A stretch of 64,000 bases of DNA, from the NCBI GenBank assembly GCA_907165135.1, contig OU015569.1, positions 6,200,001 through 6,264,000 on the forward strand, written 5' to 3'. The translations under genes were made by a program, and so were the position numbers. Shown here in pieces: positions 1,814 through 5,296 of this stretch (the stretch's first letter is position 1; the number at the start of each line of letters is the position of its first letter). This DNA comes from Oikopleura dioica. Taxonomy: Eukaryota > Animalia > Chordata. Below the pieces are notes generated by a model. The model did not search any database. It had not been told where the DNA came from and was given only the letters and a program-made list of their open reading frames with translations.

Positions 1814-4655
1814 TCAACCAGTCCCTTCAGCCTCATTGGCAGCTGGCTTCTCCTTCTTTTCTCCCCTGAATTCGTGTTCGGCTTTGAGGGCTCGTTTTTT
1901 GTGTAGCCGGACGAGCTCTTCGACGACGAAGTCAACATCGAGGACGCCGTGTTGCTGCGCATCTCTAGTTCGCACGGCGCAAGTTCCGGCTTCAAGCTCT
2001 TTGTCTCCAACGACGAGAATGAAGTTCCACTGCTCCAACTGGGCTCGTCGGATTCGGTAGTTAAAGGTGTCTGAAATTTAGTTAGAAAGCAAATATCATA
2101 TTTCGTTGCAAAATAAGGATAATATAATGGTAAGAATATACGGAGAATAAAAAGAAGGGGAAAACACATGAGTAAATAAGATTCTGATATTTCTTATAAT
2201 AAGAATATAGAAACTGACCGACGCAGTCTGCATCCGCTTCTGCTTCGATTCCAGCATCGAAGAGCTTGGTAGCGATGCTCTGGGCGAACTGCATTTGAGA
2301 TTTTCCGATTGGGACGACTTTGACTTGTCTGGGGCTGAGCCAGAAGGGCCATTTGCCGCCGAAAGATTCTGTAAGAATGGCGACGCATCGCTCGATTGAA
2401 CCCAAAATTGCGCGGTGGATCATTACGGGCGTCTCTTCCTTGTTGTCGCGCACGAACTTGAGCTTGAATCGCTGCGGCAGTTGGAAGTCGAGCTGAATAG
2501 TGGCGAGCTGGTGTCTTCGTTTCAACGCGTCGAGGATTTTTATATCGATCTTTGGTCCGTAGAAGGCTCCATCGCCGGGATTGAGCTCCCACTTTGTGTC
2601 GTTCGCAGTGCAGAAAGTGTTCAGAGCGTTCGTGAGCATACTCTCAGCTTGATTCCACTCAGCCACTTCTCCCAAAAACTTCTCTGGTCGGGTCGATAGG
2701 TTAAGTTCGAAGGTAAATCCAAATGTGTCGTACACAAATTTAAAGAATTCAAGAGCACCGGTGATTTCATCTTCAATCTGCTCACGGGCGCAGAAAATAT
2801 GAGCGTCATCTAAGGAGATTTTTAAAAGGTGTCTCGCTACGCGCTAAAGTGGCCTACCTTGCTGGAAGCGTCTAACTCTTGTAAGGCCAGATAGTGCGCC
2901 AGACAATTCATTTCGGTGGAGAACACCAAAGTCAGCGAATCGAAGGGGAAGCTCTTTGTAACTTCTGAGTCGAGAGCCGAACATGACACAGTGGCCGGGG
3001 CAGTTCATTGGCTTCATTGCCCATTTGTCTTCCTCGACCTTGAATGTAAACATGTCATCTTCGTAGTGTTGCCAATGGCCTGACGTTTTCCAAAGCTCTG
3101 AGTTGAAGATGTTTGGTGTGACGACCTCTTTAAATCCTCGCTTTCGGTACTCGCTTCGAATGAAATCCTAAAAGAATATATACAGTAGATAAATATGGCT
3201 TCTTACTTGGAGTCGGTTATAAATGATAGCACCGCGGGGGAGCCAGAAACAGGAGCCGGCGGAAACCGGGTCGAAAGTCCAAAGCTCTTGCTGAACTCCG
3301 ATTCTTCTGTGGTCTCGCTTTTTCGCCTCTTCCTGGAAAGTAACCCACTCGGTGAGCTGCTTCTTATCTGGGAAAGTGATACCATAAACTCGTTGAAGTG
3401 ACTCCTGATCGGCTTTTCCTTCCCAGTATGTTGCGCTCGTTTTGTAGAGCCTATAATCAGTGACATGCGTTTTCAATCAAAACTTACTTGCAAGCCTTCG
3501 CTTTCCCGGTATGTGGAAGGTGAGGACCTCGACACATATCGATCAGATTACCACATCTGTAAACAGTCGTGTCGCCAATATTTTTCTCTTCGATCAGACG
3601 TTGTTTGAAAGGATTATGCTTGAACATATCAATGAGCTGTTGCTTTGTGACATTAAGTCGCTGGAAAGGCTGCTTTTCTTTCATCATTTGGTAGTAAAGC
3701 TTCTCAAGCTTGGGCATATCTGCTTCGGAACTAATAGTATTGTTGCCCATCCACATATCGTAGTAAAATCCGTCTTCGATGTCGGGACCGTAGCAGAGAG
3801 CACCGCCAAAATATCGCTCCATACACTCACCCAAAATATGAGCACTAAAATAAAATTAAGAAGAAACGGTAAATATGTTATAGTTTACCTCGAGTGCCAG
3901 TAAGTTTCTTTACCTTCCTTATCCGAAAACTTGAGTAAGGAAAGAGTGCAATCGCCCTCTAACCGTCTGGTCAAATCCCAAACTTGATCGTTGACCTTGG
4001 CACAAACGACAACATTAGCAAGACCGGAAGAGATTGATTTCGCAATGTCAAGAGGAGTTGTTTCCCACGATGTTCCTTCCTTGACTGCTCCATCTGGAAG
4101 CGTGATTTTGATCGGATTCTTTGGCATTGCGGCGATTCGTTCTTCTTGGGCGGCAAAGAGCTCGTCGAACATCTTCATTCGGTGGGCAACATAGACTGGG
4201 TCCTCTAAACATAGATTTGAGTTTTTGTTTATATAAACAACTAGAGAGAGACGATTTTTTAAAGTAACAAACCTTTCATTTGTCCGGTTTTCGCATCACG
4301 CTGGACACCTTTCGCTGGGAGGAAATCAAAATTAACATCCTTCGAGTGGCAGGATCCGCTTGCACATTGAGCTGCAGGGGCCGCTGGTGTAGCAGCAGCC
4401 TCCGGTGCGGCTTTTTTCTCTTGCTTCTGATCGCCACCCATCTCGAATTTCACTTGTTTGTACCATCGCATCAGATGGGGGTGTTGCACCGGCGCTCCAT
4501 CAAATTTCTTGAGCGCGTCTAAAATCAATAATCAGTTGCTTTTGAAAAGTAAAGCGGCACTTGCCTTTGTCCGCTTGGGAAATTTGGTAGCCATTGAGGA
4601 ACGGAAGCTTCGAGAGCTTTTCGTTCAGCTCGTTGAGCTCTTGAGCCGATGCCAT
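1814..4655 (-). CDS. TARS1: Cytosolic threonyl-tRNA synthetase with N-terminal eEF1B/GST-C-like extension
   Basis: TGS domain ([28 protein letters not shown]), editing domain ([12 protein letters not shown]), motif regions [66 protein letters not shown], and the anticodon-binding domain. Exons join in frame across short introns. The ATG at 4655 follows a TTTAG acceptor. Confidence 0.97.
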
Positions 4656-5296
4656 TGAATCTAAATTGTGCAGCGTTAGCTTGAGTTTCTTTCCGATCCC
4701 TAAATCTAGGTAACAGGTTGATGCTATTGGCTAACCTTTGTCTTTTGGGCTGAAACGCAATATATGTGATATTTGCAGTGGGCGAATCGAGGCCTAAACT
4801 AAAGGTTAGCCAATTTTTCCCTTTCTTTGTCACTCAGCCTATTCCTCCTTTCCTTAGCTATTATATTAAACTTTTTACCCGTTAGCCACGAGTATTTACT
4901 TTTAGAATAACGCGTGTAGACACCAGGTGCTGAGCCTTGAACAAAGAAGGGCTCATTATCGCATTTTAAACGAGAACAACTAGAAATTCGGCGTTGAAAA
5001 TAACTGTAACATGTGAATATTTATTTTGTTTCTTTTGATTGAATTTAACTAAGTTTCACTGTTTATGATTGAAGCTGAATTGGTTCTTGAACTTATAAGA
5101 TGACACAGAGAGAATTAAGATTCATGGGATTACTCGTTGAACGTAAAAACGCAGTCAGACAGTAATTCTTATTGCAGTAAAGGTTTTTATCAAATGTTGT
5201 AAATCCATGGAGGAATCAAGAAAGCAGTAAAAGCAAGTTGAAATAGTCGCCGCGGTGCCCATTTGAATCTATCCTGCAAGAAGGCAAGTTCTTTTT

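Follow-up and report, generated by a model that had tools for sequence, protein, structure and literature searches.

Fusion of an eEF1B-alpha-type N-terminal domain to the threonyl-tRNA synthetase of Oikopleura dioica, and its predicted docking on eEF1B-gamma

We find that a stretch of 64,000 nucleotides (nt) from the genome of Oikopleura dioica (assembly GCA_907165135.1, contig OU015569.1, positions 6,200,001 to 6,264,000 of the forward strand, analysed at its full length and called the window below) contains a complete gene for threonyl-tRNA synthetase (ThrRS) on the minus strand at ~4956-1746. The introns of this gene are very short, and the synthetase is preceded by a small N-terminal domain of the kind otherwise found on the elongation factor subunit eEF1B-alpha (old name EF-1-beta), here called the N-domain. 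An earlier note, made from the sequence alone, had pointed to this N-domain and to its possible role in the docking of the enzyme. The gene model draws on X1, a metatranscriptome run whose contigs used here match the window at 99% identity or more and leave 4069-4361 uncovered; on the raw RNA reads X15-X17, which are sparse, stem from a lineage with 90-95% identity and allow no count at junction 4273/4204; and on L009, L010 and L011, JGI environmental contigs recovered by a scan with exon 3 (amino-acid identity in exon 3, 92-95%). The parts of the gene are, in the order of transcription:

4956-4900, minus strand: upstream exon -2, coding portion of 19 codons opened by an in-frame ATG at 4956-4954 (alignment with L009-L011)
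4899-4794, minus strand: 5' intron of 106 nt, GT..AG (missing from L009-L011)
4793-4736, minus strand: exon -1, 58 nt, without an ATG of its own (alignment with L009-L011)
4735-4661, minus strand: 5' intron of 75 nt, GT..AG (joint 4660/4736 in X15 and X16 RNA reads; missing from L009-L011)
4660-4565, minus strand: exon 1, with ATG 4655-4653 and N-domain residues 1-30, i.e., helix 1 and the L-P-F-L-N-G-Y loop (sequence and homology)
4564-4519, minus strand: intron 1, 46 nt, GC..AG (4518 and 4565 joined in an X1 contig of 99% identity or more; missing from L009-L011)
4518-4273, minus strand: exon 2, whole (open frame)
4518-4436, minus strand: first part of exon 2, N-domain residues 31-58, i.e., helix 2 and helix 3 with the invariant R-W (alignments and model)
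4435-4358, minus strand: Ala/Pro/Lys/Glu-rich linker, varying in length and sequence (in-frame indels between lineages)
4357-4273, minus strand: conserved end of the N-terminal extension, ~27-28 residues (dN/dS 0.03-0.08)
4272-4205, minus strand: intron 2, 68 nt, GT..AG, phase 1, splitting the codon G|AG (exactly these bases missing from L009-L011)
4204-3889, minus strand: exon 3, conserved pre-TGS helix and TGS domain (Pfam TGS, E 6.5e-19)
3888-3845, minus strand: intron 3, 44 nt (removed in X1 contig; missing from L009-L011)
3844-3488, minus strand: exon 4, editing-domain region (Pfam tRNA_SAD, E 6.9e-8)
3487-1746, minus strand: remaining ThrRS exons, class II core and anticodon-binding domain (open frames; X1 joints 3166/3206, 2070/2219 and 1759/1825; frame check)

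The exons in the window, read together with the open reading frame (ORF) of a full-length homologue, L010:2599-5007, have the domain order of a cytosolic class II ThrRS, namely TGS, editing domain, class II core and HGTP anticodon-binding domain; the homologue contains all four ThrRS Pfam domains (TGS, tRNA_SAD, tRNA-synt_2b and HGTP_anticodon). Identity to named animal ThrRS is 53-64%. One ThrRS locus was found in the O. dioica genome, and the product of its spliced-leader mRNA is an enzyme of ~800 residues.

It is close to certain that the N-domain and the complete ThrRS are fused in one ORF. In X1 contigs, introns 1 and 3 (4519-4564 and 3845-3888) are skipped exactly. The contigs L009-L011 are intronless, with the 75-, 46-, 68- and 44-nt introns precisely gone, likewise the 106-nt 5' intron, and each of them holds one ORF of 800-803 codons that begins with MASAQ and ends at the stop codon of ThrRS. 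In L001, a genomic contig from a sister lineage, intron 2 has retained its two splice sites, and its interior has diverged. Within exon 3 the substitutions are mostly at third positions (synonymous-type), starting at the first codon past the acceptor, and the exon has no start codon before its first codons. Protein calls from other appendicularian-like transcripts consist of the translated spliced leader, followed by the N-domain methionine and continuing into ThrRS. As operons and spliced-leader trans-splicing exist in O. dioica (PMC7986045), one could argue that exons 1 and 2 are a separate small operon gene, that ThrRS is trans-spliced at 4204 and that the fusion is artefactual, or even that the motif is a chance resemblance. 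A retained intron 2 would bring a stop at 4261-4259, which would suit a separate gene, and junction 4273/4204 is uncovered by reads of this strain. Yet the two parts lie in a single frame in three independent transcript contigs and in many spliced-leader-prefixed ORFs, exon 3 shows coding-type evolution from codon one without an earlier start codon, and chance likeness is ruled out by the profile match described below (E 1.2e-21). We consider both versions of this explanation extremely improbable, and the small-operon-gene version was rejected on the intronless sister contigs and the spliced-leader-prefixed fused ORFs. The peptide, the Ala/Pro linker and both junctions (4564/4519, and G|AG at 4272/4205) are base for base as the earlier note had claimed. 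Of the two splice joints that it had named for a check by junction reads, 4564/4519 is spliced in an X1 contig and 4272/4205 is documented only in the sister-lineage contigs L009-L011.

Likewise close to certain is the genuine homology of residues 1 to ~58 with the N-terminal GST-C-like domain of eEF1B-alpha. A profile was made from an alignment of 20 N-domains taken from ThrRS proteins only, with no eEF1B sequence included, and was searched against the PDB. The best match was 5DQS chain D, the N-domain of human eEF1B-alpha (E 1.2e-21, 79.5 bits), with profile positions 2-60 aligned to 5DQS_D residues 9-67; AIMP3 came next at E 2e-9, followed by GSTs of the delta class and by GST-like domains in p43, EPRS, GluRS and AIMP2. 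With the natural intronless transcript contig L010 as the query representing the O. dioica lineage, a single sequence searched against the whole PDB matched 5DQS_D only (E 2.5e-4). Within the genome itself, the alignment of exon 1 with the eEF1B paralogue L004 spans 27 residues at 48% identity (E 2e-6). At the level of families, 19 of the 20 ThrRS N-domains match Pfam PF21972 (Arc1p_N_like) at E up to 1, the best of them at 6e-7, in matches that span columns ~17-59 of 81 only; at 23.4 bits (E 7.4e-5), the domain of the O. dioica lineage falls short of the gathering threshold of 27 bits. The genome's own eEF1B N-domains (L002 and L004) match the same profile columns and are also sub-threshold, at 13-24 bits, and one cockroach ThrRS has a precomputed PF21972 match.

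The AF2 model of the N-domain (pLDDT 89) has three helices, at residues 4-14, 27-33 and 44-56. Compared to 5DQS_D by Foldseek, it gave a TMq of 0.80 and a TMt of 0.57 at a root-mean-square deviation of 2.1 A over 59 columns (E 0.16), and all top matches were GST-C folds. The Foldseek E-values are weak (0.06 or worse), the domain being small, and we have relied instead on the TM-score and on the uniformity of the matches, all of them GST-C folds. A look-up in the ESM Atlas led to Arc1p_N_like and GST_C clusters with scores of 0.89-0.90, which we take as consistent leads only. The reading of this region as a GST-C-like eEF1B N-domain, for which a profile search had been named as the check, was thus borne out both by the match to 5DQS_D, alongside sub-threshold PF21972, and by the three-helix model (TM 0.80).

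Since an intron splits the 58-residue domain, searches with single exons were nearly empty. Neither exon 1 nor exon 2 alone found anything useful in the PDB, and in Pfam exon 1 reached only E 0.034 (PF21972); BLASTP of exon 2 against the eEF1B paralogue gave no match, a word search with exon 2 returned one 57-residue fragment, and a word search with the N-domain region of a cockroach ThrRS returned one termite only. The EF1_GNE exchange domain and the central acidic region are absent from L010:2599-5007, the EF1_GNE loci of the genome lying elsewhere. Nor does the protein have a thioredoxin-like GST-N followed by a complete GST-C of ~200 residues, as the folded unit comprises 58 residues in three helices. 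The parallel that had been drawn to the GST-like appendices of MetRS, EPRS, ValRS and CysRS therefore goes too far, what is present being only a 58-residue, three-helix GST-C piece. The likeness to human eEF1B-alpha (5DQS), on the other hand, takes in homologous sequence, the three-helix fold, the gamma-contacting loop and R-W helix and the predicted interface. What differs is the part behind the N-domain, where eEF1B-alpha has an acidic region and a guanine-nucleotide-exchange domain and the O. dioica protein has instead the linker and a complete ThrRS. The loop differs as well, being L-P-[FY] in the appendicularian ThrRS copies and S-Y in most eEF1B-alpha and arthropod ThrRS copies.

Selection on the domain was estimated from the ratio of nonsynonymous to synonymous substitution (dN/dS) between the three transcript lineages L009-L011. 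The values are 0.03-0.09 for the N-domain, 0.3-0.46 for the linker and 0.015-0.03 for the enzyme core, and purifying selection thus acts on the N-domain as strongly as on the core. Its near-invariant columns among ThrRS are G22, R48 and W49 together with the hydrophobic loop. The end of the extension, at 4357-4273 (dN/dS as listed above), matches no known motif; it is recognisable in other appendicularian-like ThrRS, and a related motif occurs in P0002 and P0154-P0160.

What would such a domain do on a synthetase? In 5DQS, loop 21-29 and helix 50-59 of eEF1B-alpha contact loop 147-155 and helix 186-196 of eEF1B-gamma (PMC9458455), and the invariant positions of the ThrRS N-domain fall within the loop and helix elements that make these contacts. 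The O. dioica eEF1B-gamma gene (L039) retains the matching loop and an R-W-F-L-T helix. When the ThrRS N-domain was modelled in complex with O. dioica eEF1B-gamma, the ipSAE was 0.68 (runs of 0.68, 0.70 and 0.68) and that of the best of three controls was 0.01; 51 of 78 solved complexes attain the mark passed here, as do 2 of 108 mismatched pairs. The runs agreed in 100% of contacts, with a pLDDT of at least 86 for the partner. On the ThrRS side the modelled contacts are S15-P18, Y23-E24 and M47-E56, and on the gamma side the A-T-C-T loop and the R-W-F-L-T..N-Q-P helix, all of them elements homologous to the 5DQS interface. We suggest that the N-domain tethers ThrRS to eEF1B-gamma, a mechanism to which we assign a probability of roughly 0.6 and which is the best supported of those considered. 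By this mechanism the dimeric ThrRS would be held on eEF1B-gamma and thereby on the eEF1B/eEF1A exchange complex, and Thr-tRNA would be made beside eEF1A, an arrangement similar to that of vertebrate ValRS in the eEF1H complex.

Several points weigh against this proposal. The docking is predicted from a modelled complex and from conserved contact elements, and eEF1B-gamma was modelled from its large exon alone (184 residues), without the 28-residue first exon. Because a similar complex, 5DQS, has already been solved, the passing score indicates likeness rather than proof: it may reflect memory of the solved structure and says that this copy resembles a binder, not that it binds. The ThrRS domain would also compete with the eEF1B-alpha-type subunits, of which O. 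dioica has at least two paralogues, for one site on gamma. The joint between the N-terminal extension and exon 3, 4273/4204, is documented in sister lineages only, no read or contig of this strain covering it. Finally, the weaker profile matches to the GST-C parts of AIMP3, EPRS and AIMP2 leave room for another GST-like partner.

The last of these points leads to an alternative in which the N-domain docks not on eEF1B-gamma but on AIMP3, MetRS, EPRS or AIMP2, or, in some animals, on the gamma-like GST of ValRS or CysRS. The profile matches the GST-C regions of AIMP3 (E 2e-9) and of EPRS and AIMP2 (E 1e-3 to 1e-4), EPRS-AIMP2 chains stand near the top of the Foldseek ranking, the GST-like domain of vertebrate ValRS binds an eEF1B subunit (PMC4394549), and the complex test is blind to which member of the family binds. 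We nevertheless regard this alternative as unlikely, as the match to eEF1B-alpha is better by 12 orders of magnitude than that to any protein of the multisynthetase complex, the conserved residues are those that touch eEF1B-gamma in 5DQS, and the GST-like contacts of the multisynthetase complex involve whole GST domains and not a 58-residue piece. The earlier note had left the docking site open between EF1B and the multisynthetase complex; the first is now the better supported, through gamma and through the complex prediction that had been proposed as a check (ipSAE 0.68 against 0.01 for the best control, a model score), and the second is possible and less supported.

The proposed tether to eEF1B-gamma has a parallel in vertebrate ValRS, which joins the eEF1B complex (eEF1H) via an appended domain derived from an eEF1B subunit (PMC4394549), the docking of ThrRS being predicted. 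The difference is that ValRS has a whole gamma-type GST-like domain, which binds the delta/beta subunit, and ThrRS has the small alpha-type partner domain, which should bind gamma. The two enzymes would thus use opposite halves of one kind of contact. MetRS, GluProRS, CysRS and AIMP2/AIMP3 are alike in using helical modules of the GST superfamily for protein-protein assembly, to which the N-domain has weak profile and fold matches; theirs are two-subdomain GST folds of ~200 residues, in contrast to the 58-residue GST-C fragment here. Vertebrate ThrRS, too, has a eukaryote-specific extension before the TGS domain, present in the ThrRS-like protein TARSL2/TARS3 and, as a Lys/Glu-rich N-extension, in TARS1, and that of TARSL2 is reported to bring the enzyme into a translation complex. 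These extensions have no sequence relation to the N-domain of O. dioica ThrRS.

The 5' end of the gene offers more than one start. Exons -2 and -1 add an extension of 40 residues that is basic, rich in Ser and Leu and like a mitochondrial presequence (L010:2479-2598). This ORF is kept in four lineages, with changes that are mostly synonymous compared to L010 and L011, and the gene call P0152 begins at ATG 4956. In three X16 reads the 3'-terminal 26 nt of the O. dioica spliced leader (sequence from PMC6883708) adjoin ~4812, and in a related lineage the spliced-leader acceptor lies at ~4812-4821, inside the 106-nt 5' intron. As the leader enters downstream of ATG 4956, the trans-spliced mRNA has its start at MASAQ. 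The start at MASAQ that had been proposed from the sequence is therefore that of the spliced-leader mRNA, and a further ATG, at 4956, is reached via two more 5' exons. A loss of most mitochondrial tRNAs and synthetases has been reported for O. dioica (PMC11384887), and because only one ThrRS locus was found, mitochondrial and cytosolic forms of the enzyme could both derive from it: cis-splicing may yield a long, mitochondrial ThrRS and trans-splicing a short, cytosolic one. Exon -1 is nearly invariant in nucleotides between lineages (synonymous difference, pS, of 0.075 vs. 0.14-0.36 in neighbouring exons), a pattern suggestive of some constraint in addition to coding, which may concern splicing or translation control.

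Upstream of ThrRS in transcription, L010:39-5010 and L011:116-5076 hold a spliced 602-residue ORF of Pyr_redox/thioredoxin-reductase type (TGR) on the same strand as the ThrRS ORF and ~750 nt from it; the counterpart of this TGR and ThrRS pair in the window extends from ~1746 to beyond 5400 on the minus strand. From the paired ORFs and the use of the spliced leader at the 5' end of ThrRS, this looks like a TGR-ThrRS operon transcript.

Some further features of the gene and of its relatives deserve mention. The last ThrRS intron, 1824-1760, is non-canonical (GG..AG, with a placement ambiguous by 3 nt), and its removal shifts the stop codon of ThrRS from 1816-1814 to 1748-1746. Intron 1 differs between this strain, with GC..AG, and the sister contig L001, with GT..AG. 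In the same genome (G000) four loci encode an EF1_GNE exchange domain (L002, L003, L004/L007 and L005/L006), and at least two of them (L002 and L004) also encode an N-domain of eEF1B-alpha type. The L-P-[FY] variant of the loop is common to L004 and the appendicularian ThrRS copies.

The distribution of the fusion was assessed from a full-length word search and a representative search, and what we say of vertebrates and holometabolous insects concerns the best 120 matches. We find the N-domain on the ThrRS of Schistocerca, Homalodisca, Nesidiocoris, Diploptera, Zootermopsis, Procambarus, Amphibalanus and Trinorchestia, on that of the crabs Portunus, Scylla and Eriocheir, and on several proteins from transcripts, including other appendicularian-like ones; the pancrustacean carriers cover locust, cockroach, termite, bugs, crabs, crayfish, barnacle and amphipod. 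Vertebrate and holometabolous-insect ThrRS among these 120 matches are ~711 residues long and have no N-domain. Judged from the sequences compared, the architecture is old or recurrent and not specific to Oikopleura. A survey of ThrRS architectures in tunicates and other metazoans had been suggested in the earlier note, and it took the N-domain beyond the tunicates, to pancrustaceans and, in a C-terminal variant, to a protist-like protein; the idea that the domain is newly acquired in this lineage is not supported, given the same architecture in other appendicularian-like transcripts and in many pancrustacean ThrRS.

In the crabs (P0275-P0287) only isoform X1, of 800-806 residues, has the N-domain. 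The other crab isoforms use alternative first exons, with either a mitochondrial-presequence-like MLTLLRTFSTRP.. start or a short Lys-rich start, and are without the N-domain. An optional domain on an alternative first exon fits a regulated function, and one might propose that the N-domain is no channelling tether and that it acts as a decoy or regulator, driving eEF1B-alpha off eEF1B-gamma, or serves a non-translational role of ThrRS. The predicted occupancy of the eEF1B-alpha site on gamma would agree with such a decoy. In O. dioica, however, a single ThrRS locus was found and both of the observed 5' forms retain the domain, and no data point to a non-translational role of ThrRS, so that we find this proposal rather improbable and continue to favor a tether to eEF1B-gamma.

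The protist-like protein, P0117, is a ThrRS of 912 residues encoded in a single ORF (L040:61-2799), with the same domain at its C-terminus (residues 860-906) behind an Ala/Lys-rich linker; the best PDB match of this C-terminal domain is again 5DQS_D (E 1.6e-4). P0117 rests on one JGI environmental contig from one sample. In a maximum-likelihood tree of the domains, which are ~60 residues long, the appendicularian copies form one clade (98/95) and the deeper branching is without resolution; a tree of such short domains decides neither for a single nor for multiple origins of the fusion. The joining of the O. dioica eEF1B paralogue in this tree, with a support of 43/0, was set aside as a long-branch effect.

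In the literature the GST domain is listed only for CysRS, GluRS-E, MetRS and ValRS in AARS Online (PMC11580382) and for the same four, CysRS, GluRS, MetRS and ValRS, in a review from 2021 (PMC8319005), and a review of synthetase complexes makes no mention of ThrRS in this context (PMC4394549). Our full-text literature searches found no paper in which ThrRS is connected with eEF1B-gamma or with a domain of GST-like or eEF1B type. The statement that GST-like domains are not standard on ThrRS is in keeping with the absence of ThrRS from the published lists of GST-domain synthetases (PMC11580382; PMC8319005). What we describe is an undescribed architecture below the thresholds of Pfam and not an unseen sequence, the proteins being already in public databases.

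Appended domains determine which synthetases join the multisynthetase and elongation-factor complexes of animals, and the prevailing view of ThrRS has been that of a free enzyme whose extension is unstructured. We tentatively propose, at somewhat less than even odds for the proposal as a whole, that appendicularians and many arthropods have an unrecognised assembly of ThrRS with eEF1B(gamma), formed via a fused eEF1B-alpha docking domain, reinvented C-terminally in a protist lineage and in some animals switched by alternative 5' exons or by spliced-leader trans-splicing. It makes the testable prediction that ThrRS binds eEF1B-gamma in tunicate and arthropod cells. The crab isoforms with and without the domain, and its loss in vertebrates and holometabolous insects, would offer a natural experiment on tRNA channelling. 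As the domain is hidden by the Pfam thresholds, its taxonomic range may exceed the carriers found here. If the proposal is true, ThrRS would be the second synthetase, after vertebrate ValRS, that is wired directly to the machine that recycles eEF1A.

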